55,348 nucleotides of DNA from Octopus sinensis (GCF_006345805.1 NW_021833798.1:1-55348); one strand, 5' to 3'. Positions 5,399-51,373 are shown, numbered from the stretch's first letter. Program-made: numbers and translations. The notes: a model not told the origin generated them from the sequence alone.

Positions 5399-5626
5399 AT
5401 GACCATCGGATATCTTCTGCTTGTGGGCATTTGTCTTGGCATTGCCAGACACGTCTATGCCGTGGATTTGACCCTGAAACCTGGTGAAACCAGTAATGTC
5501 GTCATCGATGCAACCATAAGAAAAATCAGAACAAAATGTATTCTGGCAGAAGATTATTATTTCCTGAGACGGTTGGCAGAGGCCCAGATGGAGTCTATCC
5601 AAGCAAGAACGGGTGGAATATGGAGG
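5399..5626 (+). CDS. Coding exon 1: signal peptide [21 protein letters not shown] plus start of N-terminal domain (VDLTL...FLRRLA...GGIWR)
   Basis: ATG in CAGCCATG context, hydrophobic N-terminus ending V-Y-A, donor GG|GTAAGT at 5627, phase 0. Confidence 0.88.
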
Positions 5627-7504: not shown

Positions 7505-9879
7505 GTGTGTGTATGTTTGTGTGTCTGTGTTTGTCCCCTTAGCATTCCTTGACAACCGATGCTGGTGTGTTTATGTCCCCATCACTTAGCAGTTCGGAAA
7601 AAAGAGACCGATAGAATAAGTACTGGGCTTACAAAGAATAAGTCCCGGAGTCAAGTTGCTCGATTAAAGGCGGTGCTCCAGCATGGCCACAGTCAATTGA
7701 CTGAAACAAGTAAAAGAGAGTAATATTTAAGTGAACAAGTATCCTGTCTTTTCTCCTTACTAAAACATTCGTCTTTGCTAAGTTTATTCGAAGACCTCTC
7801 AAGTCTATACTTAGAATTTCCTCTTTAATTCGCCTGTTGATCTATGAGAACTAAGCCATCAGCATATAGGGATCCCAGTGGATAACCTATCTTACACTCC
7901 TCTGTGATGCTCTGTAGGATTATGAGAAAAGCATGTAAAAAGCACCATCCAAACATGGCTGATGCCAGCACCATATCGACTGGCTTCTGTGCCGGTGGCA
8001 CGTAAAAAGTACCATCCGAACGTGGCCGATGCCAGCGCTGCCTTGACTGGCTTCCGTGCCTGTGGCATGTTAAAAGCACCAACCAATCGTGGCCGCTGCC
8101 ATACTCCCCTGGCACCTGTGCCGGTGGCACATAAAAAGCACCCACTACTCTTGCGGTGTGGTTGGCATTAGGAAGGGCATCCAGCTGTAGAAACACTGCC
8201 AGATCAGACTGGGCCTGGCGCAGCCTTCTGGCTTCTCAGACCCCAGTAAAACCGTCCAACCCATGCTAGCATGGAAAACGGACGTTAAACGATGATGATG
8301 ATGATGATACGACGGTTTCTTTCAGTTTCCATCTACCAAATCCACTCACAAGGCTTTGGTCGGCCCGAGGCTATAGTAGAAGTATGTGGTTGGTAAACAA
8401 GCTACTTACCACACAGCCACTCCTGCGCCTCTAGTTAATTTTAGCTAATTCTTGTTTATTTTCAGATCATTAAAATGGAATGTCAAGTTAAGAAAAACAA
8501 GCATTTTTGACACCTCCTTCTTTTTGCTTTTAATCAAGGTTCTAAGGCCATAAAATGCTAGGGGGACAAACACAGACACACACACATATATATATACATA
8601 TATACGACAGGCTTCTTTCAGTTTCCGTCTACCAAATCCACTCACAAAGCATTGGTCAGCCCAGGGCTATAGCAGAAGGCACTTGCCCAAGATGCCATGC
8701 AGTGGGACTGAACCCGGAACCATGTGGTTGGTAAGCAAGCTACTTACCACACAGCCACTCCTGCGCCTTCGTGATCTTTATACCTTGATCCAATGGTTTG
8801 ATTCTTCTATGGTTTGCTCTTTCGAAGGCATCTGTTTTGTCTTTGTTGCACTTTACAAAGATACTGCTGCGTCAATCATTGAGTGTTACATCTTCTGTTA
8901 TAAGTTGGGTAATAATGCTTTTGTCTGAAACTGGCAGAAACGTTAGCACGCCGGGCTCGTCTGCCGTTACGTTCTGAGTTCAAATTCGGCCGAGGTCAAC
9001 TTTGCCTATCATCCTTTCGGGGTCGATAAATTAAGGACCTGTTACACACTGGAGTCGATGTAATTGACTTAATCCGTTTGTCTGTCCTTGTTTTTTGTCT
9101 GCCGTTACGTTCTGAGTTCAAATTTGGCCGAGGTCGACTTTTCCCTTCCATCCTTTCGGGGTCGATAAATTAAGGACCTGTTACTCACTGGGGTCGATGT
9201 AATCGACTTAACCCGTTTGTCTGTCATTGTTTGTCCCCTCTGTGTTTAGCCCCTTGTGGGAAGTAAAGAAGTAGGTATAAGTTGGGTAATAATGCTTTTG
9301 TCTTTTATTTCTGTAGGTAACCAAAGCCCAACTGACAACTGTCAAAGATGCTTGCAAAGGTACACTGGGACCAAGCTGTAGTAAAGTCCAAACAGAGTTG
9401 AACGTTGCTGTATCAACCGTAACATTGTCCGACCTACGAAAACCCCTATATTCTGGACTGGTAATGAGCTTGTTTATCTTAAACTTACAAGCGCCAATCT
9501 CAGTCGATAAACAAGGGCAAGCAGATTACTGGGTCCAGCATATCAACCCAGATGGCGCGAGGGAAGTCTTCGTAGATTCTGCAAAGAAATTAGAACAGAG
9601 GAATGGTAAGTAGAGATGTTGTTTAGAATTGCATGCGAGATATTTGACATGTGAAGACCTGGTGAGGAGGACCGAGCATTGAAGTACAAATAACAAGTTT
9701 ATTCCGGATCGGATCACAGAATGCAGTGTTTTTGACGTCTATATCTAGCATATTGACCGTCCACTTTTAGTGGTCAGTCCTTTAAATTTTGTATGTAAAA
9801 AATATTTTAATCTTCAGATTTTTTTAATATGCTAGGCCACTGGTTTTAATTGATTAATATCAATTTCTACCCTTATTCA

Positions 9880-10891: not shown

Positions 10892-13800
10892 GTATGTATA
10901 AAACAGCTGGTCCCTCTGTTTTTTGAACGTCATTGCTAAGATGTTCGAAATAGATGGTAGGGTAGGATACGGGCTTGTCACCCGCATGGGTACCCAGGTT
11001 ATTTAGGAAGTCGAAATACCCAGTGGCTGGTGCAGCAGTATTGTTGTTAGCTGCTACAAGGGTAAGGGAGATGTCTTGGAAGCCAAGTATAGAGTTTTAC
11101 AAGCAAGTATAAAATTACAGACAGGGTTACACCCCAATTAATGAGGAGTAGATTTCGGCTAGACGGAATGCTGTTTGGCCTTGCCTCCAGGGAGAAGCAT
11201 TATTGGTGCTATTTTTATAGTCAGGCGGTGAGCTGGCAGAATCGTTAGCATGCCGGGCGAAATGCATAGCCGTATTTCGTCTGTCGTTATGTTCCGAGTT
11301 CAAATTCCGCCGAGGTCAACTTTGCCGTTCATCCTTTCGGGGTCGATTAAATAAAGTACCAGTTTCCCACTGGGGTCGATGTAATCGACTTAATCCCTTT
11401 GTCTGTCCTTGTTTGTCCTCTCTGTGTTTAGCCCCTTGTGGGCAGTAAAGAAATAGGTTGGGAGATGAGATATGGGGAGTACATGACTGGGAAGTACCCA
11501 GCAAGTACAAGCAGAGACAAAATCCTTTTAGGACCCCATATAGACAGACCTTTTGAAGTAGAGTTAATCACCAATTGTCATTTGTCATCTCTTCCATAAG
11601 ACCCAACATCTTGAGATCAGCCATCACTACTTCATCTCATGGCTCTTCTTTCATAAGTTCCGTCCATTTTGAGCGACATCCGCTTCTTTATACAACTGCA
11701 TTCATCCATAGATATCACATAACCAAACATAACATACTCCCCTCTTTTCCACATGTCTCTTCTCTTTCCACAAGTTCCATCCATTTTAAGTGATGGCCAC
11801 ATCTTTATGTACCCGCTTTCATCCAAAAACATCACATATCCAAACCGACACAGCCGTCTCTTTTCCATGTCTCATGTCTCTTCTCCTTCCGCAAGTTCCA
11901 TCCATTTTAAGTGATGGCCACATCTTTATGTACCCGCTTTCATCCAAAAACATCACATGTCCAAACCAACACAGTCCCTTCTTTTCCACGTCTCATGTCT
12001 CTTCTCCTTCCGCAAGTTCCATCCATTTTAGACGACAGCCTTTTCTTTATACAACTGTATTCAGCCATATTGCGGATTCCATGGACAGCGAGGCCAACCA
12101 ATGGAGAAGTTCTTAAGCAGATCAGGCCGAAAATGTCGCTAGAAGCTAGGATCACCAAGCATAGACTGGCATATTTCGGTCATATTATGCGGAGAAAATC
12201 CCTGGAGAAGGACATCATGCTTGGAATGGTCAGTGGCAAGAGAGGAAGAGGCCGACCAATGGAGAAGTTCTTAAGCAGATCAGGCCGAAAATGTCGCTAG
12301 AAGCTAGGATCACCAAGCATAGTTGGCATATTTCGGTCATATTATGCGGAGGAAATATCTGGAGAAGGACATCATGCTCGGAATGGTCAGTGGCAAGAGA
12401 GGAAGAGGCCAACCAATGGAGAAGTTCTTAAGCAGATCAGGCCGAAAATGTCGCTAGAAGCTAGGATCACAAGCGTAGATTGGCATATTTCGGTCATATT
12501 ATGCGGAGGAAGTCCCTGGAGAAGGACATCATGCTCGGAATGGTCAGTGGCAAGAGAGGAAGAGGCCGACCAATGGAGAAGTTCTTAAGCAGATCAGGCC
12601 GAAAATGTCGCTAGAAGCTAGGATCACCAAGCATAGTTGGCATATTTCGGTCATATTATGCGGAGGAAATATCTGGAGAAGGACATCATGCTCGGAATGG
12701 TCAGTGGCAAGAGAGGAAGAGGCCGACCAATGGAGAAGTTCTTAAGCAGATCAGGCCGAAAATGTCGCTAGAAGCTAGGATCACCAAGCGTAGATTGGCA
12801 TATTTCGGTCATATTATGCGGAGGAAATATCTGGAGAAGGACATCATGCTCGGAATGGTCAGTGGCAAGAGAGGAAGAGGCCGACCAAGAACCCGCTGGC
12901 TTGACACCATCAGGAGTGATACCGGAATGGACATGACCAATCTGAAGGAAGCGGCCCAGGATAGAACTGACTGGAGGACACTGATCCAACGAGTGACCGA
13001 GCGTCGACTTCGACTGAGCGAATAGAGAGAGATTCAGCCATATACATCACATGTCCAAACTAATAAAGTCCCCTCTTTCCCATGTCTCTTCTCTAACAAT
13101 TCCATCTAGTTTAAGCGACAGCCACTTCTTTATGCAACTGTCTTCATCCATACACACCACATGCCCAAACTAACACAGTACCTCCTTTCCCACATCTCAT
13201 GTTTCTTCTTCCACATGTTCTATCTAATTTAAGCGACAGCCACTTCTTTATGCTGCTCTCTTCATCAATACCCATCACATGTCCAAACCATCACAGTCCC
13301 TTCTTTTGCACATCTCATATCTCTTCTCCTTCCGCAAGTTCCATCCATTTTAGACGACAGCCTCTTCTTTATACAACTGTATTCAGCCATATACATCACA
13401 TGCCCAAACTAACACAGTACCTCCTTTCCTACATCTCATGTTTCTTCTCCTTCCACATGTTCCATCCATTTTAAGTGACAGCCACTTCTTTATGCTACTC
13501 TCTTCATCAATACACACCACATGTCCAAACCATCACAGTACCCTCTTTACCACATCTCATGTCTCTTCTCTCACAATTCCATCTAATTTAAGCGACAGCC
13601 ACTTCTTTATGCAACTGTCTTCATCCATACACATCACATGCCCAAACCAACACAGTCGTCTCTTTTCCACACTCCCTCTTATGCCTAATTTTTTCTCAAT
13701 ACACAAGCACTTGATCATACATGCACACTGATGTTGAACATCCAACAGAGCATACTAACTTCATTCCTCTCTAGTCTTCGGTTGTCCTTTTCATTCATGG

Positions 13801-15738
13801 CCCATTTTTCACTACCATGTAGCATTGCTCTTCATTCACAAAAATATTACAATCTACATTTTTATGCAGAGAGATCTTTTGTTGCCCGTAAGTGTAATGG
13901 CTCTCTGAATTTTATCCATCCTATTTTTATTCTTGCAGCTGTAATTTAAAAACAATCAAATGCATAAATTTAATAAGAATTTTATATTTACAGACTTATA
14001 AAGATAAGTTTGTTTTAAATATTTTTCCAGATTGCGCCAGTGCCCAGATCGACCTTGTTTTCCTGATTGATTCATCCGGAAGTGTTCAAGAGCCTAACTT
14101 TAATAAGACAAAAAACTTCTTGGAAAATATTGTGCGTAATCTAGACATTGGTCCAAATAAGACACGTGTTGCAGTGATTAGATTTTCAAGTTTTTCTCTT
14201 GTGTCATTTTCCTTAAGTGCCCACAGTACGAACTCTGCAGTAATAAAGGCTATTGACGCTATAAGTTATGATGATGGTAGTAGTACTGCTACGGACTTGG
14301 CTCTTGACGAAGTACGTACCAGTGTCTTTACAAATACAAGAAAATCTGTTGCTGCAAAAGTTTTAGTTTTGGTCACAGATGGACACTCAAATAGTGAAAT
14401 TAGAACAGTAACGGCAGCTCAGAAACTGAAAGATGACGGCGTCACTATATTTACAATTGGAGTTGCCAATCCAAGAGTGTCTGAGTTAACTGCAGCAGCA
14501 AGTGAACCCAGTTGTACACATTTCATCAACTTGAAAGATTATAATGAGATTGGTTTTATTGTGAGGGAAATTGAATCTGATTCCTGTGAAGGTAAGTCTG
14601 ATGTTTAATAATTGTCATTATCAGTGGTGGTGGTAGGCGGTGAGCTGGCAGAATCGTTAGCACACCGGGTGAGATGCTTAGCAGTATTTCGTCTGCAACT
14701 ATGTTCTGAGCTCAAATTCCATCAAGGTCGACTTTGTCTTTCATCTTTTCGGGGTCAGTGAATTAAGTATATATATATATAGGCGCAGGAGTGGCTGTGT
14801 GGTAAGTAGCTAGCTAACCAACCATATTGTTCCGGGTTCAGTCCCTCTGCGTGGCATCTTGGGCAAGTGTCTTCTGCTATAGCCCCGGGCCGACCAATGC
14901 CTTGTGAGTGGATTTGGTAGACGGAAACTGAAAGAAGCCTGCCGTATATATGTATGTATATATATATATATATGTGTGTGTATGTGTTTGTCTCCCTAGC
15001 ATTGCTTGACAACCGATGCTGGTGTGTTTACGTCCCCGTCACTTAGCGGTTTGGCAAAAGAGACCGATAGAATAAGTACTGGGCTTACAAAAGAATAAGT
15101 CCCGGGGTCGAGTTTGCTCGACTAAAGGCGGTGCTCCAGCATGGCCGCAGTGAAGTGACTGAAACAAGTAAAAGAGTAAAAGAGTATATATATTTCCTTC
15201 AGGCCGAACTTGTAGCCAGGGGCCATGGAGCTGGTCACAGTAGTTAAATGAGGCACTGGCAATGACCTCGCTCGAATGCTTTTTCACATGCCACCAGCAC
15301 AAGTGCTAGTAAGGCAACACAGGTAATGATCGCGCTCAAATGATGTTTTTAATGTGCCATCGGCTCGGAGGCCAGCTTGTTGCTCTGGCCCCGATCTCAC
15401 TCGTATGGTTCTCTTAGTGCTCCACTAGCACGGATGCCAGTCATCGAATTCGATTTTGATTTTAACTAGCCTCAACAAGTTTTTGCAAGCAGAGTTTAGT
15501 GTCCAATGAAGGAAAAGCATGCATAAGTGGGCCGGTTACACCCCTGGCATAGGCCACAAGGTTATGGTCTCAGTTGCGCTTGCCAAGTCTTCTCAAGCAC
15601 AGCATATTTCCAGGGGTCCCGGTCACCAGTCATTGCCTCAGTGAGGTCCAGTGTTTGAAGGTCATGCTTCACCATCTCATCCCAGGTCTTCCTGGGTCTA
15701 CCTCTTCCACAGGTTCCCTCAACTGCTAGAGTGTGGCA

Positions 15739-15777
<39 letters not shown>

Positions 15778-18700
15778 TATATATATATCATCATCATCAT
15801 CATCATCATCGTTTAACGTCCGCTTTCCATGCTAGCATGGGTTGGACGGTTCAACTGGGGTCTGGCAAGCCCGAAGGCTGCACCAGGCCAGTCAGATCTG
15901 GCAGTGTTTCTACAGCTGGATGCCCTTCCTAACGCCAACCACTCCGAGAGTGTAGTGGCTGATTTTATGTGCCACCGACACAGGTGCCAGACGAGGCTAT
16001 ATATATATATATTAAAGTATATTTATTACTTAATTATTTTATTGTTATTTTAATTTTAATATTTCTATTATATGTAATTTTCTAGATGGTGTAATTTAAT
16101 TGTTCATTTTGAATTGATAACAAGTGTTTTTTTTCCTAATTATATATATATGTGTGTGTGTGTGTGTGTATAGGCATAGGAGTGGCTGTGTGGTAAGTAG
16201 CTTGCTTACGAACCACATGGTTCTGGGTTCAGTCCAAGCAAAGCCAGGCTGTACTGCTAGTTATATTATATTATATTATATGATATACCATATGGTATGG
16301 TATGGTATGGTATGGTATTGTATTGTATTGTATTTAACTGCTATATTGTGTTTTCTTAAATGTTACCTTCTGTCTTCAGCTCCGGCCGTTGTTCAGAACG
16401 AAACTTCATTACTCAATATGGCCATTCCAAAAACTAACGAGACAAAACAACAAGTCCTGCAGATCAACAACATGGCAAAGTCCACCTTGGGTACAACAGT
16501 TCTGGTAAGATGAATATTCTAGAACAATATCAACTGAGTTGTGGTTTTCTAATTTTATGGATGAGTGAGAAAGACGGGACAGTACCCATAAACCTCTTAG
16601 TCCTTCCAAGACTGGATGGTCACATTCTTATTATTAATGTTTAATTGGGAGATTTATGGCTGCAAGATAAATGTGGACAAAGGAGGGAATTCTGGAGAGT
16701 GGGTCGACATTGTGTGGGTGGAGAAAGGATTGGGCATAGTGGTTAGTACAGGAAAAGTGGGGTTTAGACATAGAATGTGTGATGAAGAGGGCAGAAACGG
16801 GTGTGCCAAATTTAGTTTGAAGTGGCTGGTATGTAAATAGCTACTTCTGAGAAGACAATGTTGTAGTAAGGTGGAAGAGACAATAGGTGGACACAGAGGG
16901 TTTAAGGGACACAGTTTGGACGTCTTTTCTAAATGAAGCAGTCAGATGAAATCAGGGACACTCTTTTACTCTTTTACTTGTTTCAGTCATTTGACTGCGG
17001 CCATGCTGGAGCACCGCCTTTAATCGAGCAACTCGACCCCGGGACTTATTCTTTTGTAAGCCCAGTACTTATTCTATCGGTCTCTTTATTTGACCAGAGG
17101 CTATAGTAGAAGACACTTGCCCAAGATGCCACGCAGTGGGACTGAACCCGGAACCATGTGGTTGGTAAACAAGCTACTTACCACACAGCCACACCTGCAC
17201 CTATAACACTGTATATGTTATATGCTTTTCATGAGTGTCCAGTTTAGTGCAGTCACTGTATATTATATCTATTGTTATTTTCTCCAGGTGAATGTCCAGT
17301 GTGGTGTGGTCACTCTGTATATTATATCTGTTGTTATTTTGTCCAGGTGAATGTCCAGTGTGGTGTGGTCACTCTGTATATTATATCTGTTATTCTTTTT
17401 TCTGGGTGAATGTCCAGTGTGGTGTGGTCACTCTGTATATTATATCTGTTGTTATTTTCTGCAGGTGAATGTCCAGTGTGGTGTGGTCACTCTGTATATT
17501 ATATCTGTTGTTATTTTCTGCAGGTGAATGTCCAGTGTGGTGTGGTCACTCTGTATATTATATCTGTTGTTATTTTCTCCAAGTGACTATCCAGTGTGGT
17601 GTGGTCACTGTGTATATTATATCTGTTGTTATTTTCTCCAAGTGACTATCCAGTGTGGTGTGGTCACTCTGTATATTATATCTGTTGTTCTTTTTTCTGG
17701 GTGAATGTCCAGTGTGGTGTTGTCACTCTGTATATTATATCTGTTGTTATTTTCTGCAGGTGAATGTCCAGTGTGGTGTGGTCACTCTGTATATTATATC
17801 TGTTGTTATTTTCTGCAGGTGAATGTCCAGTGTGGTGTGGTCACTCTGTATATTATATCTGTTGTTATTTTCTCCAGGTGAATGTCCAGTGTGGTGTGGT
17901 CACTGTGTATATTATATCTGTTGTTATGTTCTCCAGGTGAATGTCCAGTGTGGTGTGGTCACTCTGTATATTATATCTGTTGTTATTTTCTCCAGGTGAA
18001 TGTCCAGTGTGGTGTGGTCACTCTGTATGTTATATCTGTTGTTGTTTTCTCCAGGTGAATGTCCAGTGTGGTGTGGTCACTCTGTATATTATATCTGTTG
18101 TTATGTTCTCCAGGTGAATGTCCAGTGTGGTGTGGTCACTCTGTATGTTATATCTGTTGTTATGTTCTCCATGTGAATGTCCAGTGTGGTGTGGTCACTC
18201 TGTATGTTATATCTGTTGTTATTTTCTCTAGGTGAATGTCCAGTGTGGTGTGGTCACTCTGTATGTTATATCTGTTGTTATTTTCTCCAGGTGAATGTCC
18301 AGTGTGGTGTGGTCACTCTGTATATTATATCTGTTGTTATGTTCTCCTGGTGAATGTCCAGTGTGGTGTGGTCACTCTGTATATTATATCTGTTGTTATT
18401 TTCTCCAGGTGAATGTCCAGTGTGGTGTGGTCACTCTGTATATTATATCTGTTGTTATGTTCTCCATGTGAATGTCCGGTGTGGTGTGGTCACTGTGTAT
18501 ATTATATCTGTTGTTATGTTCTCCAGGTGAATGTCCAGTGTGGTGTGGTCACTCTGTATGTTATATCTGTTGTTATGTTCTCCATGTGAATGTCCAGTGT
18601 GGTGTGGTCACTCTGTATGTTATATCTGTTGTTATTTTCTCCAGGTGAATGTCCAGTGTGGTGTGGTCACTCTGTATGTTATATCTGTTGTTATTTTCTC

Positions 18701-21700
18701 CAGGTGAATGTCCAGTGTGGTGTGGTCACTCTGTATATTATATCTGTTGTTATGTTCTCCTGGTGAATGTCCAGTGTGGTGTGGTCACTCTGTATATTAT
18801 ATCTGTTGTTATTTTCTCCAGGTGAATGTCCGGTGTGGTGTGGTCACTCTGTATATTATATCTGTTGTTATGTTCTCCAGGTGAATGTCCAGTGTGGTGT
18901 GGTCACTCTGTATGTTATATCTGTTGTTATGTTCTCCATGTGAATGTCCAGTGTGGTGTGGTCACTCTGTATGTTATATCTGTTGTTATTTTCTCCAGGT
19001 GAATGTCCAGTGTGGTGTGGTCACTCTGTATATTATATCTGTTGTTATTTTCTCCAGGTGAATGTCCAGTGTGGTGTGGTCACTCTGTATATTATATCTG
19101 TTGTTATGTTCTCCTGGTGAATGTCCAGTGTGGTGTGGTCACTCTGTATATTATATCTGTTGTTATTTTCTCCAGGTGAATGTCCAGTGTGGTGTGGTCA
19201 CTGTATATTATATCTGTTGTTATGTTCTCCATGTGAATGTCCGGTGTGGTGTGGTCACTGTGTATATTATATCTGTTGTTATTTTCTGCAGGTGAATGTC
19301 CAGTGTGGTGTGGTCACTCTGTATATTATATCTGTTGTTATGTTCTCCATGTGAGTGTCCGGTGTGGTGTGGTCACTGTGTCTATTATATCTGTTGTTAT
19401 TTTCTCCATATGAATGTCCCGTGTGGTGTGGTCACTCTGTATATTATATCTGTTGTTATTTTCTGCAGGTGAATGTCCAGTGTGGTGTGGTCACTCTGTA
19501 TATTATATCTGTTGTTATTTTCTCCAAGTGACTATCCAGTGTGGTGTGGTCACTCTGTATATTATATCTGTTGTTCTTTTTTCTGGGTGAATGTCCAGTG
19601 TGGTGTTGTCACTCTGTATATTATATCTGTTGTTATTTTCTCCAGGTGAATGTCCAGGGTGGTGTGGTCACTGTGTATATTATATGTATTGTTTTGTTCT
19701 CCAGGTGAATGTCCAGTGTGTTGTGGTCACTCTGTATATTATATCTGTTGTTATTTTCTCCAGGTGAGTGTCCAGTGTGGTGTGGTCACTCTGTATATTA
19801 TATCTGTTGTTATTTTCTCCAGGTGAATGTCCAGTGTGGTGTGGTCACTCTGTATATTATATCTGTTGTTATGTTCTCCAGGTGAATGTCCAGTGTGGTG
19901 TGGTCACTCTGTATATTATATCTGTTGTTATTTTCTCCAGGTGAATGTCCAGTGTGGTGTGGTCGCTCTGTATATTATATCTGTTGTTATTTTCTGCAGG
20001 TGAATGTCCAGTGTGGTGTGGTCACTCTGTATATTATATCTGTTGTTATGTTCTCAAGGTGAATGTCCAGTGTGGTGTGGTCACTCTGTATATTATATCT
20101 GTTGTTATGTTCTCCAGGTGAATGTCCAGTGTGGTGTGGTCACTCTGTATACTATATCTGTTGTTATTTTCTCCAGGTGAATGTCCAGTGTGGTGTGGTC
20201 ACTCTGTATATTATATCTGTTGTTATTTTCTCCATGTGAATGTCCAGTGTGGTGTGGTCACTCTGTATATTATATCTGTTGTTATTTTCTCCAGGTGAAT
20301 GTCCAGTGTGGTGTGGTCACTGTATATTATATCTGTTGTTATTTTCTCCAGGTGAATGTCCAGTGTGGTGTGGTCACTCTGTATGTTATATCTGTTGTTA
20401 TTTTCTCCAGGTGAATGTCCAGTGTGGTGTGGTCACTCTGTATGTTATATCTGTTGTTATTTTCTCCAGGTGAATGTCCAGTGTGGTGTGGTCACTCTGT
20501 ATATTATATCTGTTCTTATTTTCTGCAGGTGAATGTCCAGTGTGGTGTGGTCACTCTGTATATTATATCTGTTGTTATTTTCTGCAGGTGAATGTCCAGT
20601 GTGGTGTGGTCACTCTGTATATTATATCTGTTGTTATTTTCTCCAGGTGAATGTCCAGTGTGGTGTGGTCACTCTGTATGTTATATCTGTTTTTATTTTC
20701 TCCATGTGAATGTCCAGTGTGGTGTGGTCACTCTGTATGTTATATCTGTTTTTATTTTCTCCATGTGAATGTCCAGTGTGGTGTGGTCACTCTGTATGTT
20801 ATATCTGTTCTTATTTTCTGCAGGTGAATGTCCAGTGTGGTGTGGTCACTCTGTATATTATATCTGTTGTTATTTTCTGCAGGTGAATGTCCAGTGTGGT
20901 GTGGTCACTCTGTATATTATATCTGTTGTTATTTTCTCCAGGTGAATGTCCAGTGTGGTGTGGTCACTCTGTATGTTATATCTGTTGTTATTTTCTCCAG
21001 GTGAATGTCCAGTGTGGTGTGGTCACTCTGTATGTTATATCTGTTGTTATTTTCTCTATGTGAATGTCCAGTGCTGTGTGGTTACTCTGTATATTATATC
21101 TGTTCTTATTTTCTGCAGGTGAATGTCCAGTGTGGTGTGGTCACTCTGTATATTATATCTGTTGTTATTTTCTGCAGGTGAATGTCCAGTGTGGTGTGGT
21201 CACTCTGTATATTATATCTGTTCTTATTTTCTGCAGGTGAATGTCCAGTGTGGTGTGGTCACTCTGTATATTATATCTGTTCTTATTTTCTGCAGGTGAA
21301 TGTCCAGTGTGGTGTGGTCACTCTGTATATTATATCTGTTGTTATTTTCTGCAGGTGAATGTCCAGTGTGGTGTGGTCACTCAGTATATTATATCTGTTG
21401 TTATGTTCTCCAGGTGAATGTCCAGTGTGGTGTGGTCACTCTGTATATTATATCTGTTGTTATTTTCTCTAGGTGAATGTCCAGTGTGGTGTGGTCACTC
21501 TGTATATTATATCTGTTGTTATGTTCTCCAGGTGAATGTCCAGTGTGGTGTGGTCACTCTGTATATTATATCTGTTGTTATGTTCTCCAGGTGAATGTCC
21601 AGTGTTGTGTGGTCACTCTGTATATTATATCTGTTGTTATGTTCTCCAGGTGAATGTTCAGTGTGGTCTGGTCACTCTGTATATTATATCTGTTGTTATT

Positions 21701-24700
21701 TTCTCCAGGTGAATGTCCAGTGTGGTGTGGTCACTCTGTATATTATATCTGTTGTTATTTTCTCCATGTGAATGTCCAGTGTGGTCTGGTCACTCTGTAT
21801 ATTATATCTGTTGTTATTTTCTCCAGGTGAATGTCCAGTGTGGTGTGGTCACTGTATATTATATCTGTTGTTATTTTCTCCAGGTGAATGTCCAATGTGG
21901 TGTGGTCACTTTGTATATTATATCTGTTGTTATTTTCTCCAGGTGAATGTCCAGTGTGGTGTGGTCACTCTGTATATTATATCTGTTGTTATTTTCTCCA
22001 GGTGAATGTCCAGTGTGGTGTGGTCACTCTGTATATTATATCTGTTGTTATGTTCTCCAGGTGAATGTCCAGTGTGGTCTGGTCACTCTGTATATTATAT
22101 CTGTTGTTATTTTCTCCAGGTGAGTGTCCAGTGTGGTGTGGTCACTCTGTATATTATATCTGTTGTTATTTTCTCCATGTGAATGTCCAGTGTGGTCTGG
22201 TCACTCTGTATATTATATCTGTTGTTATTTTCTCCAGGTGAATGTCCAGTGTGGTGTGGTCACTGTATATTATATCTGTTGTTATTTTCTCCAGGTGAAT
22301 GTCCAATGTGGTGTGGTCACTTTGTATATTATATCTGTTGTTATTTTCTCCAGGTGAATGTCCAGTGTGGTGTGGTCACTCTGTATATTATATCTGTTGT
22401 TATTTTCTCCAGGTGAATGTCCAGTGTGGTGTGGTCACTGTATATTATATCTGTTGCTATTTTCTCCAGGTGAATGTCCAATGTGGTGTGGTCACTTTGT
22501 ATATTATATCTGTTGTTATTTTCTCTAGGTGAATGTCCAGTGTGGTGTGGTCACTGTGTATATTATATCTGTTGTTATATTCTCCAGGTGAATGTCCAGT
22601 GTGGTGTGGTCACTCTGTATATTATATCTGTTGTTATATTCTCCAGGTGAATTTCCAGTTTGGTGTGGTCACTCTGTATATTATAACTGTTGTTATTTTC
22701 TGTGGGTGAGTACCCAATTTGGTGCGGTCACTCTGTATGTTACATCTATTGTTATTTTCTCCAGGTGGGTGTCCAGTGTGGTGTGGTCACTGTGTACGCT
22801 TCATTTAACAACAGTTATCCCAATGAAGCCGACTACGACTACGAGGATTGGGCAACTGACAATAAGCCGGGCAAATTATTTCTTGTACAAAAATCAGAAC
22901 TTGATCAGCTTTTCCTTACTGTTCTTTCCAAGAAACGATTTGATCTCAATTCCTCAGCCTGTGACAATCCTTCCTACAACATCAGCTTCAAAACAACAGG
23001 TAAGCTACTTCATTTTCTTTTATACATTGTTCTATAATATCCTTTTCAAACTCCACCCGTCTAACACCCGTGGACATGTTTACAAAGTCAGAAAACAGCA
23101 CAGCTCCCATGACTTTCGGAAACGTTTTTTCATGCTGAGAGTTGCTGAAGCATGGAACAAACTGCTGGCATCAGTTGTTAGTTGTTGGAGCACTGCATCC
23201 TTCAAAACTTCCATGCTTTCTAAGATTCGCCAACACTACACCTGATTTTCTCTCCTCCATACACACGCAAGCATGTATCTGACTCATACATTGTACATTA
23301 CTGCATATGCTTTATATGCACTTTCTGACAAGTTGTGGTGTACCTGAGCACTGTATACAATAATTTCATTATCATTATTATTATAATCTTTATATCTTTA
23401 ATGTAAAGGCTGTAGATTACGGAATGATCAGTGAACCCTTTTGCATTCAAACTGGACATATCCGGCCCAAATATCCTACCTGTTTTATGTTCAGACTGGG
23501 GCTGCTCTAATATTTTTTTCCTCTGCTATTTCATATCAATCTATGAATGCGTGAAACATCAGATGAAAATGAAACGTCATCATCATCATCATCATCATCG
23601 TTTAACGTCCGTTTTCTACGCTAGCACGGGTTGGACGGTTCGACCAGGGTCTTGGAAGCCAAGGAGGCTGCACCAGGCTCCTGTCTGATCTAGCAGTGTT
23701 TCTACAGCTGGATGCCCTTCCTAACACCAACCACTTCATGAGTGTAGCGGGTGCTTTTTACGTGCCACCGGCACAGGTGCCAGGGGAGTCGCCAATCCTA
23801 ACCTTGCTGACAGCCTCTTTGTATAGGGCCTGTACAGCCCTTATTAGCCATTCGTCAATCTCCAGTTTCCGCATCGACCACCAGATAAGGGATTGGGGGA
23901 CCCTGTGAAAGGCTTTTTTAGGTTCTTGAAAGCAGGTAGGTGATGGGTGGGGGAAGGAGCAGTGAACGTTTCTTTAAGAAAAATTAAACTTTAAAAAGAA
24001 ATATATTTCCTAGATTCGTAATCTCTTTCTCTTTCTCTTTTACTTGTTTCAGTCATTTGACTGCGGCCATGCTGGAGCACCTCCTTTAGTCGAGCAAATC
24101 GACCCCGGGACTTATTCTTTGCAAGCCCAGTACTTATTCTATTGGTCTCTTTGCCGAACTGCTTAGTGACGGGGACATAAACACACCAGCATCGGTTGTC
24201 AAGCAATGCTAGGGGACAAACACAGACACACAAACATACACACACATACATATATACGACAGGCTTCTTTCAATTTCCATCCACCAAATCCACTCACAAG
24301 GCTTTGGTCGGCCCGGGGCTATAGCAGAAGACACTTGCCCAAGGTGCCACGCAGTGGGACTGAACCCGGAACCATGTGGTTGGTAAGCAAGCTACTTACC
24401 ACACAGCCACTCCTGCGCCTATGTGATCTTTCTTAAGAAAAGAAAACACTTCTATGCAAACCCATGCAAAGTGTACCTTCCCTTTTCACTTTTAAACAAG
24501 CAATAATAAACAAGCAGTGATGATTCTGCCCATAAGAAAGGAACAAATAATACAATATGGCTGTATGCATTGCTAATCTTTATATATAAAAGTGAGGTTG
24601 TGTGCTGTCTGTCTCCTACGATTTAGATTCCTATCTACTCCCACATTTTGCGGTGCAGTTTAACCAAAACTGGGTATCTTATAGTCGTGATTCATATCGA

Positions 24701-25116
24701 GCCCTTCTGGGTATTAGCGCGCGTCTACGATGAGTCTACGATTTAAAAACAAATTTACCATCATTTTTTTCCATTTTAATGCATTTTTGGCATATATAAG
24801 GGAAGTAACTCTCTAAAAATTTATTATTAAATCTCAGAACGTAAAAAGCTACAGTAACACCCCACCTTTGTGGTTAGCCATATTGAGATGGCTATTATAC
24901 TTTACATCTCTAAAAATGTTTATATAGTTATTTCCCTTACAAACCCGAGCAATGCCGGGCGATACTGCTAGTATATAATAAACGTATTTCCATCTTTTAT
25001 TATTTTCAGTGGCCACGATAACTCCAGTAAGAATGAGTGATGCTGCAGTCACTAAACAGCTTTTTATAAACGCATGGATTTATGCCGGGCTCTTACTTCT
25101 TTGGCAAATGGCTTGA
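5399..25116 (+). CDS. Six-exon gene for a 514-aa secreted, probably GPI-anchored VWA-domain protein (signal peptide, uncharacterised N-terminal domain, VWA, C-terminal domain, GPI signal)
   Basis: Exons assembled by hand: 228+289+561+125+235+107=1545 nt, open from ATG 5399 to TGA 25114-25116. All five introns start GT and end AG after pyrimidine tracts, and phases match (0,1,1,0,1). Confidence 0.9.
5799..6194 (-). mobile_element. Non-autonomous Helitron in intron 1
   Basis: Same TC...hairpin...CTAG termini as 415-807; A/T flanks. Confidence 0.8.
6478..6835 (-). mobile_element. 5'-truncated CR1-like LINE 3' end
   Basis: Homologous to 23036-23385 and 28718-29355, and to the 3' end of the long CR1-like element; (ATT)n-type tail. 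Confidence 0.75.
7288..7722 (+). mobile_element. SINE family A
   Basis: GGCGCAGGAGTGGCTGTGTGG head to GTAAAAGAG tail. Confidence 0.8.
7835..8310. mobile_element. RTE fragments: minus-strand RT piece (7835-7935) next to a plus-strand RTE 3' UTR with (GAT)n tail (7940-8310)
   Basis: Translation [26 protein letters not shown] resembles the YADD motif region; tail GACGTTAAACGATGATGATGAT at ~8281-8308. Confidence 0.6.
8927..9275 (+). mobile_element. SINE family B with an internal ~130-bp duplication, flanked by a 28-bp direct repeat
   Basis: TATAAGTTGGGTAATAATGCTTTTGTCT at 8899-8926 and 9276-9303. Confidence 0.8.
9317..9605 (+). CDS. Coding exon 2: [13 protein letters not shown]...[10 protein letters not shown]...QADYW...LEQRN
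   Basis: Acceptor TCTTTTATTTCTGTAG ends 9316; open frame matches track ORF 9398-9613; donor G|GTAAGT at 9606, phase 1. Confidence 0.88.
10030..10065 (-). ncRNA. Minimal type I hammerhead-ribozyme-like motif (Penelope-type) with variant core
   Basis: Minus strand reads CTTT-CTGTAGA-A-GAGC GTAG GCTC-GAAA-CGTA-AAAG: stem I, core, stem II hairpin, GAAA, palindromic ACGT stem III, GUA cleavage triplet. Core has U at position 6 instead of A. Confidence 0.55.
10130..10433 (-). mobile_element. SINE family C (tRNA-derived head GGAGGCGCAATGG...GGTTTCGATTCC)
   Basis: Homologous to 45643-46027; clear A- and B-box-like motifs. Confidence 0.75.
10434..10900. repeat. Long (TA)n/(TATG)n compound microsatellite
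   Basis: Visible directly; produces the spurious YI-repeat ORFs in the track. Confidence 0.95.
10990..11520 (+). mobile_element. Degraded RTE reverse-transcriptase fragment interrupted by a SINE B copy (11224-11458)
   Basis: Translation [23 protein letters not shown] and a degenerate AIFIVR segment resemble the N-terminal RT region of RTE elements. Confidence 0.55.
11575..13950 (-). mobile_element. RTE LINE C-terminal region with several internal ~120-bp duplications
   Basis: Minus-strand translations such as [31 protein letters not shown] match the RTE C-terminal RLxWFGHV...GRGRP signature. Confidence 0.75.
12071..13031 (+). mobile_element. Second-family RTE 3' fragment nested antisense in the first, with five ~158-bp tandem units and a 12-bp TSD
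   Basis: [11 protein letters not shown]...[14 protein letters not shown] translation; TSD ATTCAGCCATAT at 12059-12070 and 13032-13043; an uninterrupted homologous site is visible near 13380. Confidence 0.85.
14031..14591 (+). CDS. Coding exon 3: complete von Willebrand factor A domain
   Basis: Acceptor ATTTTTCCAG ends 14030; translation [12 protein letters not shown] (MIDAS DxSxS), [30 protein letters not shown]; donor G|GTAAGT at 14592. Confidence 0.95.
14636..15185 (+). mobile_element. Partial SINE B (14636-14765) followed by SINE A (14779-15185)
   Basis: Homology to other copies of both families. Confidence 0.75.
15240..15995 (-). mobile_element. RTE 3' coding end plus proximal UTR (15240-15740) and a separate distal 3' UTR copy (15788-15995)
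   Basis: Minus-strand translation [47 protein letters not shown]; second copy has a (GAT)n tail. Confidence 0.75.
16380..16504 (+). CDS. Coding exon 4: [42 protein letters not shown]
   Basis: Acceptor CCTTCTGTCTTCAG ends 16379, phase 1 in; donor CTG|GTAAGA at 16505, phase 0 out; two N-E-T sequons. Confidence 0.82.
16965..17205 (-). mobile_element. Internally deleted SINE A abutting the left edge of the 59-bp array
   Basis: Tail and head homology, central part missing. Confidence 0.75.
17208..22797 (+). repeat. 59-bp tandem array (~93 units) derived from the intron 4/exon 5 junction
   Basis: Consensus ATTATATCTGTTGTTATTTTCTCCAG|GTGAATGTCCAGTGTGGTGTGGTCACTCTGTAT. First clean AG at 17286-17287, last at 22763-22764: 5477 nt/59 is about 93. 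Some units are 57 bp; both edges are diverged. Confidence 0.97.
22765..22999 (+). CDS. Coding exon 5: [26 protein letters not shown]...[14 protein letters not shown]
   Basis: Acceptor GTTATTTTCTCCAG ends 22764 (last unit of the 59-bp array); complex open frame matches track ORF 22690-23037; donor AG|GTAAGC at 23000, phase 1. Confidence 0.85.
23036..23385 (+). mobile_element. CR1-like LINE 3' end starting ~36 nt after the exon-5 donor
   Basis: Translation [36 protein letters not shown] (CR1 C-terminal signature); (ATT)n tail. Confidence 0.8.
23577..23905 (-). mobile_element. Internally deleted RTE: 3' UTR fused to an RT fragment
   Basis: (GAT)n tail at ~23577; minus-strand translation [33 protein letters not shown]. 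Confidence 0.65.
24030..24420 (-). mobile_element. SINE family A
   Basis: Full head-to-tail homology. Confidence 0.8.
24577..24971 (+). mobile_element. Non-autonomous Helitron ending 38 nt before exon 6
   Basis: A|TC at 24576/24577, CTAG|T at 24968-24972, 3' hairpin CCCG..CGGG. Confidence 0.85.
25010..25116 (+). CDS. Terminal coding exon 6: [35 protein letters not shown], probable GPI-anchor signal
   Basis: Acceptor CATCTTTTATTATTTTCAG ends 25009 and phase 1 matches exon 5; small-residue cluster S-D-A-A (candidate omega site), polar spacer, hydrophobic tail to the stop. Confidence 0.8.
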
Positions 25117-28717: not shown

Positions 28718-29355
28718 TAATAATGAAATTATTGTATACAGTGCTCAGGTGCACCACAACTTGTCAGAAAGTGCGTATAAAACATATTCAGTAATGTACA
28801 AATGTCTGGAAAGTGAACAGTGTATGAGTCAGATACATGCTTGTGTGTGTATGGAGGGGAGAAAATCTGGTGTAGTGTTGGCGAATCTCAGGAAGCATGG
28901 AAGTTTTGAAGGATGCAGTGCTCCGACAACTAACAACTGATGCCGGCAGTTTGTTCCATGCTTCAGCAACTCTCAGCGTGAAAAAATGTTTCCTAAAGTC
29001 ATGGGAGCTGTGTTGTTTTCTGACTTAGTAAACATGTCCATGGGTGTTAGACAGGTGGAATTTGAAAAGGTGGTCAGAGTTATTGTTTGTACGATGGTTA
29101 ATAATTTTATGGGTGTCTGCCACGTCAGCTGCCAGACGTCGGAGTTTCAATGTGTCCATGCCCAGTGAAGTAAGGCATTCAGAATATGGCAAATGCCTGA
29201 TGGAGGGTATTCTCTTGGTTGCCCGTCGCTGAACGGCTTCCAGACGATTAATATCCTGGGCAAGACAGGGGTTCCAGACTGGTGATGCAAATTCCAGGTG
29301 AGGTCTTACCCTAACTATATAAAGCCGCAGATAGATAGCCGGAGAACGGCTCACA
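28718..29355 (-). mobile_element. 5'-truncated CR1-like LINE (~640 bp)
   Basis: Translation VRPHLEFASPVWNP..QDINRLEAVQRRATKRIP. Confidence 0.85.
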
Positions 29356-29398
29356 GAATTTGATTATTATAATTGCTAAAATATTAATTTATATTTAA

Positions 29399-29857: not shown

Positions 29858-31155
29858 ATTTCTTGATATTATTAGTTACGATATGTATACCTATTTAATT
29901 TATTGTTCATCATTATTTTTATAATGTGATTTAACGTATTACATATAATTTACTTTGAGAAATAGTTTTCTAAGACAATATATTATTTAATAGTTAAGAG
30001 GTTTATTTGTTACATAGTATTACATTTAAGTAAATAAGTTTAATATTAATTGATATTTTGGTCAACTCTATAAGTGAGTGAAATGTTAAATCTATATATA
30101 CTATAATTAATTAATAATATAGTAAGTTTATATTATAGGTGTGTATATATTTGAACCATTTTCTATTTCTAATTCTAATATTTATAGCTTGTACTGGCAT
30201 TATGTATATAATTTAACATGAATTTTTTTAGTATATATTGCCTAATTAGAATAAGATTTAATTTAGATGTTTATTAAATAAATAAATTAACTAATTAATA
30301 ATTTAATTTAATGTATATAGATTAAATTATAATATTTTAGTTTTCGCTTAATGTATAATAATAATAATAATAATAATAATTGTGTACAGTGCTCAGGTGC
30401 ACTACAACTCATCTAAAGTGTATATATAATCAGGTGTAGTTTCGACGGATTTCGGAAAGCATGAGGGCCTTAAAGGATGCAGTGTCATGGCAGTCAACAA
30501 CTGATGCAGGCAGTTTCCACGCTTCAGAACCCTGAGCGTGAAAAATGTTTCCGAAAGTCATGGGAGCTGTATTGTTTTCTGACTTTGTAGGCATGTCCAC
30601 GTGTGTTAGACACATGGAGATCAAAAGGTGTTCAGTGGTTGTTGTTGGTGAGGTGGTTGATAACTTTGTGGGTGTTTACCAAGTCCGTCGCCAAACGCCG
30701 GAGCTTCAGTGAATCCATGCCCAGGGAAACAAGGCGCTCAGAATATGGTAGGTGTCTGATGGAGGGTATGCGTTTGGTTGCACGTCTCTGGACAGCTTCC
30801 AGGAGGTCAATGTTCTGTGCGAGATAGGGGTTCCAAACTGATGATGCGAATTCCAAGTGTGGTCGTACCATAGCTGTATACAGTTTTAAATAGATGGCTG
30901 GAGAGGGCTAACAAAAGACCTGCTGAGTGATGCCAAGACACCCTCGGCCTTCCTGACAATCTTAGAGATATGCTTTGACCAACGCAAATCACTGCTGACA
31001 GTGATGCCTAGGTCACGCTCGCAAGAGGATTTCTTGATATCAGTGTTGTGGAGGGAGTATGTGAACGCAGGGTTTTTTCTCCCAAAATGCATGGTGGTAC
31101 ACTTGTCCACAGCCAGTTTCAGTTGCCAGTCTGTGATCCATTGCTGCATTGTGTT

Positions 31156-33200
31156 CTAGGTCTGATTGCAGGAAAGAGTTGTAGACATCAGGATCTGTCC
31201 TCTGATTTCAAGGTACAGCTTGATGTCGTCTGCATATTTCAATACTGTGGCATTCTTTAAATTGGCATCTATGTCGTTAATGTATGCCACAAACAAGAGG
31301 GGACCAAGGACAGATCCCTGTGGTACACCCGATGACATCTCATATGGTGTAGAGTGCTGTCCTAGAACTGTGACTACCTCCTTTCGGCTGAGGATGAAGG
31401 ATTTCAACCAGTTAAAAAGGTCATCCCCCACACCCATTGCAGAGAGTTTCACCATAAGCCTTTTGTGTGGCACAGAGTTGAAAGCCTTAGCAAAGTCAAG
31501 GTAGACAACATCCACCCATGAGCCACTGTCAGTAATCTGAGTAATGTCCTCAAGGAACTCGACAAGCTGGTCACTGCAGCTGGAGTTAGGGACAAATCCA
31601 TATTGTGAGGGTCGGATGAGACTGTGAGAGCTCCAGAAGTTCCAGAGTGTTTCTCTGACACACGATTCCATCAGTTTTGCAATACAGCTAGTGAGACTGA
31701 CTGGGCGATAGTTGACAGGTGATGTGCGGTCGCCCTTTTTGAACAGAGGAATGACACTGGCAGTTTTCCACTGCTCCGGAGTAGCACCATTGTTGAGACA
31801 GTACTGGAAGAAAATAGAAAGCTGGTGTAAAAGGAAGTGCCTGCCACGTTTGAGAAGCAGGTATGTAACTCCATCGAGACCAGGGGAGGCAAAGTTGCGC
31901 TTACTTTGAAGGTGACGTCGCAGCATTGCAGGTGTAAATTCCATAGTTGTTATGGAGTTTGCTGTTAGTGATGGTGAAGATGGTACATTTTGACTTTCAA
32001 CAGTGAATATGTTTGCATAGCACTCGGCAATGAGTTCTGCGCATTCCTTGGGGTCGTCAGTGATCTGGTTTGTGTGAGGGTTGCGAAGAGGGCCCACTGG
32101 AGAGTGAGGTCTCTGCTTCGAATGCACATATTTCCAGAAAACCTTGCTGTCAGGATTGGCTGCTATGCACTGTTCAAATTCAAGCACTGCTTTTTTTGTC
32201 ACTTGCTTGAGATGGTTGGAGGATTTATTCCGCTTCTTCCTGTTGGTGTCTGATTTATGCAACAACTTGTATTCCCGTTCAGCAGTCCGACGTTCCTTCC
32301 TGGCAAGTCGGACCGCTGAAGTTTCCCAAATTGCCCTTTTGGGGCGGTTCTTCTTTTTTTGTTTACGTGGCACTGATGCTGCACATGCTGCCCATATTGA
32401 GTCCAGGATACTCTGGAGTATAGTATTCACATCTCCAGAGTTGTAGAACTCACGCCAGTTTGGGTGCTGTAGTTCAGTGTGGTACAGGTTCCAATCTGCT
32501 CTCTTCCAATCGAAGGAAGCAGATTGGAGATGGTTCAGGTGTTTGTTGCCCGCAAGAGCCAGATTGGCGATGATCATAGCATGATCAGAGTCACCTAGAG
32601 GTTCCTCCGTTGTGCAATTGATAACTGCTTCAGGAGTTGTGGTGAAGAGCAGGTCCAAGGTGTTGTCGCCTCTGTTGGAGAGGTGACTACTTGTGACCAG
32701 TTTGAGTCCAGCACAAGCTCAACAAAATCGTTTGCACTCTGTGGCCAATGGAAGGTCTCCCAATCGATCTCAGGATGATTGAAATCGCCTGCAATAAACA
32801 CATAAGTGGCTGTTTTCCTGGCAGCAGCTCGGAGGACATTGCAAAGCTGTGTGTCCGATGGTAACTTGGGGGACGATAAACAACGCCAAGCAGGAGTGTT
32901 GACATGGTCATACGCACGTCACAGAAAAAAACTTCTTCTTGTGATTCGTTCAAATCGGCACAAGGAATTACCAAAAAATTTGAACGAACGTAGACCATCA
33001 CACCACCACCACGGCGGTTAGTGCGGTCCTTACGGAAGAGGTTGTACCCCGTAATGTTGAAAACCCCATCACAGAGTAAGGAATGCGCCCATGTTCCGTG
33101 ACAGTGATGAAGTCAGGGTCAACACTTCTGACGTAGGCGTTGAACAAATGTATTTGTTGCATAAACTGCGAGCATTTAAGGACAACAATTTGTACCCTGC
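31156..33200 (-). pseudogene. CR1 ORF2 (APE and RT), frameshifted; 500-aa intact stretch at 31156-32658
   Basis: Motifs as above are split over several frames in the ORF track. Confidence 0.88.
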
Positions 33201-42300: not shown

Positions 42301-42680
42301 ACCAACAACAACACCGCCATGAACACCCATACTACATATACTACCTCCACTACTACCTATACTGCCATAACACACCACCACCACCACCACAAAAGCCACT
42401 GCTAGCTCCACCACCACCTCCATCAACACACTGCGCCGCCACCACCAACAACAACACCGCCATGAACACCCACTACTACATATACTACCTCCACTACTAC
42501 CTATACTGCCATAACCACCACCACCACCACCACAAAAGCCACTGCTAGCTCCACCACCACCTCCATCAACACCACTGCGCCGCCACCACCAACAACAACA
42601 CCGCCATGAACACCCACTACTACATATACTACCTCCACTACTACCTATACTGCCATAACCACCACCACCACCTCCATCAA
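39350..42680 (+). repeat. 3.3-kb (CAC/CAT)n trinucleotide tract with a diverged ~140-bp higher-order repeat at its right end
   Basis: Visible directly; all three plus frames lack stops for more than 2.5 kb because of composition. Confidence 0.92.
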
Positions 42681-51078: not shown

Positions 51079-51373
51079 CGGTGTCTATGTATGTGTGTGT
51101 ATGTATGTATGTATGCATGCATATATGCATGTATGTATACCTGTATGTATGTATGTTTGTGAGTGTGCACACTTTCGTGCGTGTGTAGGTATGTTTGTGT
51201 CTTTGCGCATATGTTTGCACTATCGATTCCGCTTGGCAATCAGTATTGGTTTGTTTACACCTCCGTAACTTAGCGGTCCGGCAAAACAGAAGCCAATAAG
51301 AATGGGTTCCAGGCCTTGAAAAACAAAAACAACAACAACAACAATAATGATAATATTAATAATAATAATCAAA

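Follow-up and report, generated by a model that had tools for sequence, protein, structure and literature searches.

Tandem copies of a gene's own 3' splice site and exon start in an intron of a von Willebrand factor A domain gene of Octopus sinensis and Octopus vulgaris

Results

LOC115230439 and the array in its fourth intron

We analyzed a 55,348-nt scaffold of Octopus sinensis (GCF_006345805.1, NW_021833798.1:1-55348; this whole stretch is referred to as the window), which carries the six-exon gene LOC115230439 and, within intron 4 of that gene, a tandem array of 59-bp units that repeat the gene's own splice acceptor together with the start of exon 5. The gene model was built from homology (tblastn with the O. 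vulgaris protein) and canonical splice sites, and all of its exons lie on the plus strand: exon 1 with the start codon and signal peptide (5399..5626), exon 2 (9317..9605), exon 3 encoding a von Willebrand factor A (VWA) domain (14031..14591; Pfam PF00092, E 1.6e-43), exon 4, which ends in phase 0 at the donor CTG/GTAAGA (16380..16504; a slash marks a junction throughout), exon 5 of 235 nt, with its first 32 nt within the repeat (22765..22999), and exon 6 with a hydrophobic C-terminal tail and the stop codon (25010..25116). The spliced product of 514 aa was found to be 100% identical over 100% of its length to the RefSeq 'uncharacterized protein LOC115230439 [Octopus sinensis]'; this supports the gene model of an earlier note, made from the sequence of the window. 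All five true donors of the gene read GTAAG, and the strong donor which that note had placed after exon 5 is present as CAG/GTAAGC. Intron 4, as delimited by its splice sites, spans 16505..22764 on the plus strand (6260 nt), ~5.5 kb of which is array; the equivalent intron of array-free paralogs is ~490-550 nt.

The array was delimited by Tandem Repeats Finder and, alongside it, by a unit-by-unit parse based on Hamming-anchored matching. Tandem Repeats Finder reported a single tandem array at 17256-22796 with a period of 59, 94.1 copies, 94% matches, no indels and a score of 9822. By the parse, the plus strand carries one degenerate unit (~17208-17257), 93 full units upstream of the real site, referred to as decoys (17256-22732; 59 bp each, with 57 nt in six of them), and the real junction unit (22733-22791). 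The end of the array at 22796 lies 32 nt inside exon 5, and its end unit holds the authentic intron/exon junction. These results bear out the central observation of the note: each unit repeats the acceptor and exon start of the gene itself, and the last unit is the real junction.

The consensus unit reads CTGTATATTATATCTGTTGTTATTTTCTCCAG/GTGAATGTCCAGTGTGGTGTGGTCACT and the real junction ctgtatgttacatctattgttattttctccag/GTGGGTGTCCAGTGTGGTGTGGTCACT; of the 59 positions of the real junction unit, 5 depart from the consensus. In the RefSeq gene model, the acceptor occupies 22733..22764 on the plus strand (ctgtatgttacatctattgttattttctccAG), with the real AG at 22763-64. Each decoy comprises a branch-point-like stretch, with a branch-like A (aUuAu) 21-22 nt before the AG, its own pyrimidine tract, (C)AG and the first 27 nt of exon 5. 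The degenerate first unit (17208..17257) consists of an ancestral intron-end remnant and a decayed exon-like part, has no AG at the acceptor position, and is preceded by an Octopus short interspersed nuclear element (SINE) copy (16963..17205, minus strand; assigned from sequence and alignment) that abuts the 5' edge of the array. The last decoy (unit 94, 22674..22732, plus strand) has lost its AG (ctgtgg/GTGAGT) and is of an older unit type that also occurs in two-copy paralogs and in one of the O. vulgaris genes described below (copy B). The array was also considered as coding sequence and rejected as such, because 59 is not divisible by 3 and no open frame is longer than 77 aa on the plus strand or 69 aa on the minus strand.

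Quality of the decoy sites and consequence of their use

An AG is kept at the acceptor position in 70 of the 94 decoys of the window (the 93 full units and the degenerate first one) and is missing in 24, of which 23 read CAT, CTG, TGG, CAA or TAT. The note had counted ~93 near-identical 3' splice sites; the 93 full decoys are there, but not all of them are live, the AG being gone in about one quarter in the window and in 26-59% in O. vulgaris. The 23-nt acceptor (-20 to +3) of 32 decoys is only one base off the real one and has an equal pyrimidine count. An acceptor of the same type, with one base different (ctacag for ctccag), is the real acceptor of an annotated exon in LOC115230178, which argues that decoy-type acceptors are competent in another context. 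Because the last decoy has lost its AG, the nearest live decoy AG lies 118 nt upstream of the real AG. Joining exon 4 to an AG-intact decoy leads to a stop after 20 codons for 65 of the 70 and after 39 codons for the other five, as the note had predicted in claiming that use of a decoy would end in an early stop.

In the accepted scanning model, the search for an AG begins at the branch point, not at the donor. The note had read the locus as running against first-AG scanning; this was overstated, since every unit supplies a branch-like stretch and a pyrimidine stretch of its own from which such a search could start. For the same reason, the choice of acceptor at this locus is made at the recognition of the branch point and pyrimidine tract, not by AG scanning. 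The older debate on donor-to-acceptor scanning is summarised by Borensztajn et al. 2006 (PMC1557585).

The unit junctions also resemble donors. Most of them read CAG/GTGAAT, which is weaker than the GTAAG donors of the gene and is separated from the donor consensus GTRAGT by one mismatch (+5), and AG/GT is found at the junction of all 70 AG-intact decoys of the window. The exact sequence CAG/GTGAGT occurs in window units 44 and 84 and in 18 units of O. vulgaris copy C. The full G/GTGAGT donor consensus was observed at a few units of the window (junctions 19764, 22120 and 22706-22711), the last of these lying directly after the destroyed AG of the last decoy, 59 nt upstream of the real acceptor. 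The likeness of CAG/GTGAAT to a donor would open further routes for the intron that the note had not considered, such as stepwise or recursive removal and 59-nt pseudo-exons.

Hiding of the decoys by RNA structure was considered and rejected: four array units gave z = -3.06 and the real junction region z = -1.39, a distinction between decoys and the real site that is too weak and too dependent on the model to be relied on. In the predicted fold, each AG/GUGAAU pairs weakly with the AU-rich start of the next unit.

Arrays in the same intron of three O. vulgaris genes

A 96-kb stretch of O. vulgaris chromosome OX597840.1 (8074261-8170658), located by way of the O. vulgaris protein P0002, was found to carry three copies of the six-exon gene (copies A, B and C), two on the plus strand and one on the minus strand, each with a 59-bp array between exons 4 and 5 (52.1, 74.1 and 149.4 copies). 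The note had suggested a comparison with other octopus species, and in this one three paralogs proved to have arrays in the corresponding intron. At the 5' edge, the window shares with all three O. vulgaris copies the tail of a single SINE insertion and, directly after it, the degenerate first unit. Because these elements are common to all four 5' edges, the array appears to have arisen once, before the triplication of the gene and the split of O. sinensis and O. vulgaris. The 3' end of the window array is nearest to copy B (98.7% nucleotide identity in exon 5, which starts with GTGGGT in both, and the same AG-dead penultimate unit), while its internal variants (CCAT, CTGCAG and ATGTTC) are those of copy A; such a mosaic of copy A and copy B features implies exchange among paralogs.

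Origin of the array and copy-number series

We searched the whole O. sinensis assembly (2.72 Gb, 13516 contigs) with the 59-mer; all counts from this search are lower bounds. Matches were found solely beside exon-5-type exons of paralogs, and no arrays independent of this one gene family, such as a genome-wide satellite would form, were detected in the assembly. A single copy is present at C28:9329495, where the intron ends in ccgtatatgtcatacctattttgttttccaccag. Two intact copies are present at C28:9324853, with flanks as at the one-copy site and the order ancestral acceptor, 27 nt of exon start, second acceptor and exon, the intron being longer by 59 nt. Two copies of which the upstream AG has decayed to GG or TG are found at C28:9317185 and on contigs C9819, C2175 and C8607; 14 units in two blocks, with a 375-bp insertion between them, are found on C2799; and 94 units are found in the window. 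Over paralogs and species, the copy number therefore ranges through 1, 2, 14, 52, 74, 94 and 149 units.

The 1-, 2- and 14-copy paralogs appear to trace the origin of the array to a single tandem duplication. By comparison of paralogs, the duplicated segment comprised ~32 nt of intron and ~27 nt of exon. Its joint shows a (C/G)TGTA(T/C) microhomology, between (G)TGTA(T/C) at +28 of the exon and (C)(C/T)GTAT at -32 of the intron, which would fit an origin by slippage. The division into 26 nt of intron and 33 nt of exon given in the note is valid as one rotation of the unit, but the paralogs place the borders of the duplicated segment as above.

The start of exon 5 follows a motif, V-x-C-G-V-x-x-Y, that is conserved in array-free paralogs, in the repeated domains of a distant octopus protein and in abalone, where the start of the exon-5 domain of Haliotis asinina reads VTCGVLDIYTS. 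Because the exon start is conserved in array-free paralogs and abalone, the exon is ancestral and the array derived from it. The converse, an exon born from a pre-existing satellite, was rejected on the grounds that the exon start is conserved in array-free relatives and gastropods and that the unit is absent elsewhere in the genome, within the lower-bound counts.

The neighbouring exon-5-type exons on C28 lie 4.6 kb apart in near-identical flanks, one with two acceptors (C28:9324765-9324877) and one with a single acceptor (C28:9329466-9329527). With intact acceptors 59 nt apart, this pair constitutes a natural two-copy test of acceptor choice inside one genome.

Variability of the AG across arrays

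The units of each long array (~350 units over four arrays) were aligned, and the frequency of non-consensus bases was scored per position. Mean frequencies at the AG positions, the intron-like positions 1-30 and the exon-like positions 33-59 were, respectively, 0.12, 0.036 and 0.016 in the window; 0.13, 0.030 and 0.025 in copy A; 0.24, 0.022 and 0.023 in copy B; and 0.43, 0.028 and 0.014 in copy C. Ranked by variability, an AG position came first in copy B and in copy C; in copy A it came second, and in the window it shared third place. The AG was destroyed mainly by G>T in the window array and in copy A, by G>A in copy B, and by A>G together with G>T in copy C, and the live decoys that remain in the O. 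vulgaris arrays number 39/53, 39/75 and 60/148. A rank argument on this variability gives ~1e-4, a value that presupposes independence of three array lineages and equal mutability of all positions. The pattern is suggestive of selection against live decoys, not proof of it, because the arrays share ancestry and amplification spreads variants. If the footprint holds, it would be a rare visible case of selection against cryptic splice sites within a repeat.

The gene family and the exon 5 domain

Members of the family combine a mollusc VWA domain, at least one copy of an unannotated domain of ~80 aa and a hydrophobic tail; gastropod and bivalve relatives also carry the chitin-binding domain PF01607. 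Exon 5 matched no Pfam family, its sole match (DCP1, E 0.19) being due to chance. It encodes a domain of ~78 aa (V.VQCG.VTVY…P…YDY…C.NP.Y) of which some octopus proteins contain up to 5-6 copies and which can also be recognised in Haliotis; this is an unannotated mollusc domain. The protein junction between exons 4 and 5 (…TTVL/…) recurs in proteins of O. sinensis, O. vulgaris and O. bimaculoides. Exact-protein look-up of the window protein and of one O. bimaculoides relative returned no records.

In nucleotide sequence, the VWA exon 3 (14031-14591) is only 90-91% identical to that of the three O. vulgaris copies, and exons 1, 2 and 4 are 93-98% identical. The ligand-binding VWA domain is thus evolving faster than its neighbours. 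The overall ratio of nonsynonymous to synonymous divergence (dN/dS), 0.7-1.0, possibly reflects diversifying selection or exchange with other paralogs.

Other repeats in the window

Intron 2 contains a second kind of tandem array, with a 157-bp unit (12090-12888, 5 copies, 96% match) and 121-bp arrays on both sides (11655-12030 and 13096-13671). The same arrangement was observed in O. vulgaris copies A and C (17488-19038 and 73998-76092 of the extracted stretch). The 157-bp unit translates to a retrotransposon-like peptide and has the appearance of a mobile-element fragment amplified in tandem. Downstream of the gene, an open frame of 520 aa on the minus strand (31156-32718, continuing to ~33112) has endonuclease and reverse-transcriptase-like parts and represents a copy of a non-long terminal repeat (non-LTR) retrotransposon; further fragments lie at 29025-29363, 30632-31155 and 50477-51355. 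A CAC trinucleotide tract (39420-41923, ~842 copies, 78% match), which gives spurious His/Thr/Pro-rich open frames of ~900 aa, is followed by 144-bp repeats (42086-42676).

Discussion

A probable by-product of repeat expansion, with a proposed choice of the real acceptor by exon definition

The structure described here is real; it recurs in a second species, and its evolution can be traced. We consider it probable that the array is a by-product of repeat expansion, that the real acceptor wins by exon definition, that the decoys have been disabled over time and that leakage is cleared by nonsense-mediated decay (NMD). The array itself is a locus-specific intronic minisatellite and most likely has no function of its own. 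Unused sequences that resemble splice sites abound in introns, and a conventional explanation for their being passed over is available in exon definition.

In this scheme, a 59-bp segment of an octopus VWA-domain gene, lying across the border of intron 4 and exon 5, would have been duplicated in tandem, with the TGTA(T/C) microhomology at the joint, and the duplicate would have expanded upstream of the exon by slippage or unequal crossing-over to tens to hundreds of copies. Many decoys differ from the real site by one base, and discrimination between the two must therefore lie downstream. Only the last copy precedes the exon sequence beyond +33 and the strong GTAAG donor at +235, which would allow the exon to be defined as a unit, as the note had also proposed. 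The decoys would then have been progressively disabled, as AG-destroying variants have reached high frequency, presumably through selection. Occasional use of a decoy would end in a stop within 20-39 codons and thus in NMD, or be corrected by re-splicing of the decoy junction.

Several observations weigh against this explanation. The junction of exon 4 to 22765 rests on the RefSeq computational model and protein homology. In O. vulgaris, the annotation does not cross the array but links copy A exons 1-4 with copy C exons 2-6; the exon 4-exon 5 junction in that species is accordingly a predicted one. This fusion may be a prediction artefact brought about by the array, or it hints that copy A exon 4 misses its own exon 5. 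A second AG, 12 nt downstream of the first (CCAG/TG), is well conserved and present in every unit, and units in which the first AG is dead are consequently not necessarily inert. Copy A of O. vulgaris has an intact decoy merely 59 nt upstream of the real acceptor. The ~1e-4 of the AG footprint assumes independence and equal mutability of arrays that share ancestry and through which variants spread by amplification. Finally, dN/dS among the four array-bearing genes is 0.7-1.0, a value that does not demonstrate strong purifying selection at the protein level.

As a side observation on the O. vulgaris annotation, the fused deposited protein (P0002; 5001-91398 of the extracted stretch) is 837 aa in length and skips the array of copy A, exons 5-6 of copy A and the whole of the inverted copy B.

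Alternative explanations

Foremost among the alternatives, though clearly improbable, is stepwise (recursive or dual-specific) splicing, in which the unit junctions CAG/GTGAAT (some GTGAGT) serve as both 3' and 5' sites. Splicing of exon 4 to a unit would regenerate a donor (CTG/GTGAAT) for an onward step, or units would be joined to one another, and the array would be removed piecewise, leaving no trace in the mRNA. In the window, 70 units have an AGGT preceded by a pyrimidine tract, units 44 and 84 match the full ratchet-point consensus with CAG/GTGAGT, copy C contributes its 18 units of that sequence, and GTGA (positions 33-36) is invariant in ~350 units. Many other positions are equally invariant, however, and the conservation of the GT is hence not special. 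The GTGAAT of most units also lacks the G at +5, whereas the real donors of the gene are all GTAAG, and an intron of 6.3 kb is short for known recursive introns. Furthermore, the real exon of O. vulgaris copies A and C begins with CAG/GTGAGT and is nevertheless annotated as coding, which indicates that such a donor-like sequence is evidently not used efficiently. Precedents for the required sites exist: dual-specific AGGT sites are used and enriched in tandem repeats such as that of UBC (PMC10809524), and Drosophila ratchet points are described as juxtaposed acceptor and donor (PMC8605326).

Somewhat less probable still is that the array has mostly broken the splicing of intron 4, such that the predicted RefSeq product seldom or never forms and the copies are on their way to becoming pseudogenes. 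The dN/dS of 0.7-1.0 among the four copies would be in keeping with this, as would the O. vulgaris annotation, which leaves exon 4 unjoined to exon 5 across the array, and the finding that none of the 59 homologues is a transcript-derived octopus protein. By contrast, all four array-bearing genes retain unbroken open reading frames of 513-514 codons and canonical AG/GT at all boundaries at pairwise synonymous divergence (dS) of 0.05-0.09, and exon 5 is 93-99% identical in nucleotide sequence between species. A high dN/dS is also expected of a fast-evolving secreted family, and the observed value fits either such a family or weak constraint. For this reason purifying selection, considered as proof of function, was set aside as uninformative.

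We also regard as unlikely, and slightly more so, a regulatory decoy array, in which unproductive pairs of acceptor and weak donor hold splicing factors, delay or prevent the removal of intron 4 and so lead to its retention or to NMD, with copy number tuning expression. The persistence of arrays of 52 to 149 units in four genes of two species speaks for this, as does the early stop that always follows use of a decoy, and decoy exons are described as promoting intron retention in human cells (PMC6097662). Paralogs with one or two copies exist, however, and look equally intact, and the frequent loss of the AG suggests that decoy activity is selected against, not favoured.

An assembly artefact, in which the array or its length stems from a mis-assembled short repeat, can be dismissed as very improbable: the window is an unplaced 55-kb scaffold and the fragments C2799, C9819, C8602 and C2175 mark a poorly assembled region of O. 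sinensis, but three arrays in the same intron, with variant compositions of their own and shared flanks, are present in an independent chromosome-level assembly of O. vulgaris, and the window array has internal variant structure rather than identical copies. The suspicion of an artefact raised in the note has thereby become very unlikely, and as regards the existence of the array it is largely refuted.

Significance and comparison with known systems

Choice among acceptors is usually studied with one or two engineered duplicates. This gene family presents a natural graded series of 1, 2, 14, 52, 74, 94 and 149 copies of a complete acceptor, in which exon definition, first-come-first-served co-transcriptional choice, recursive splicing and decoy-mediated retention can be compared directly. 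If splicing simply ignores the decoys, the locus is a striking but conventional case of exon definition. There is a small chance that the array instead is a working chain of dual-purpose sites, removed in small stochastic steps, or that live decoys set the rate of intron 4 removal. Were that so, a copy number of 52-149 would be a heritable dial on the expression of a fast-evolving secreted gene family, and the rules of acceptor choice could be measured, for the first time in a natural system, on dozens of complete 3' splice sites that are identical and lie in cis.

Among systems with related features, the Drosophila ratchet points (PMC8605326) similarly place a pyrimidine tract-CAG directly against GT(R)A(G)T in intronic, non-coding sequence; these are single conserved sites with a strong GTAAGT in very long introns, whereas the octopus junctions number dozens in a 6.3-kb intron and are mostly GTGAAT. 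The UBC gene (Duan et al. 2024, PMC10809524) is likewise a tandem repeat with AGGT at the unit boundaries as potential donor or acceptor, but its units are coding and in frame, and stochastic splicing changes the number of monomers. The octopus units are 59 nt long, intronic and out of frame, and if retained they would give stops. Decoy exons (Parra et al. 2018, PMC6097662) resemble the octopus units in that they are pseudo-exons within introns, with ends that look like splice sites, and do not undergo productive splicing; they are single conserved cryptic exons with demonstrated factor binding, unlike the repeated array, which is known from sequence. In the literature searched, neither a report on the octopus locus nor a 3' splice-site counterpart was found, a statement that holds for the searched library only.

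The closest described case appears to be the human F7 gene, in intron 7 of which the first unit of a 37-bp minisatellite spans the exon 7/intron 7 boundary, and of 5-9 identical 5' pseudo-sites only the one adjacent to the exon is used, as shown by minigenes (Borensztajn et al. 2006, PMC1557585). The two loci have in common that the terminal unit of a tandem array spans an exon/intron boundary, that identical or near-identical pseudo-sites lie in the intron, and that use of these sites would disrupt the message. Of the features that mark the F7 type, a junction-containing end unit, near-identical pseudo-sites and variable copy number are found in the octopus array, the last of them among paralogs and between species, and exclusive use of the exon-adjacent site is predicted. 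The differences lie in the site that is repeated (in F7 a 5' splice site downstream of the exon in 5-9 copies, in octopus a 3' site upstream of the exon in 52-149 units) and in the content of the unit, which in octopus is a whole acceptor module with branch-point region and pyrimidine tract, at a copy number roughly ten times that of F7. Moreover, the octopus array has been inherited across paralogs and two species, and its site usage is deduced, while that of F7 comes from minigenes. In this sense the octopus array is the mirror image, at the 3' splice site, of the F7 minisatellite.

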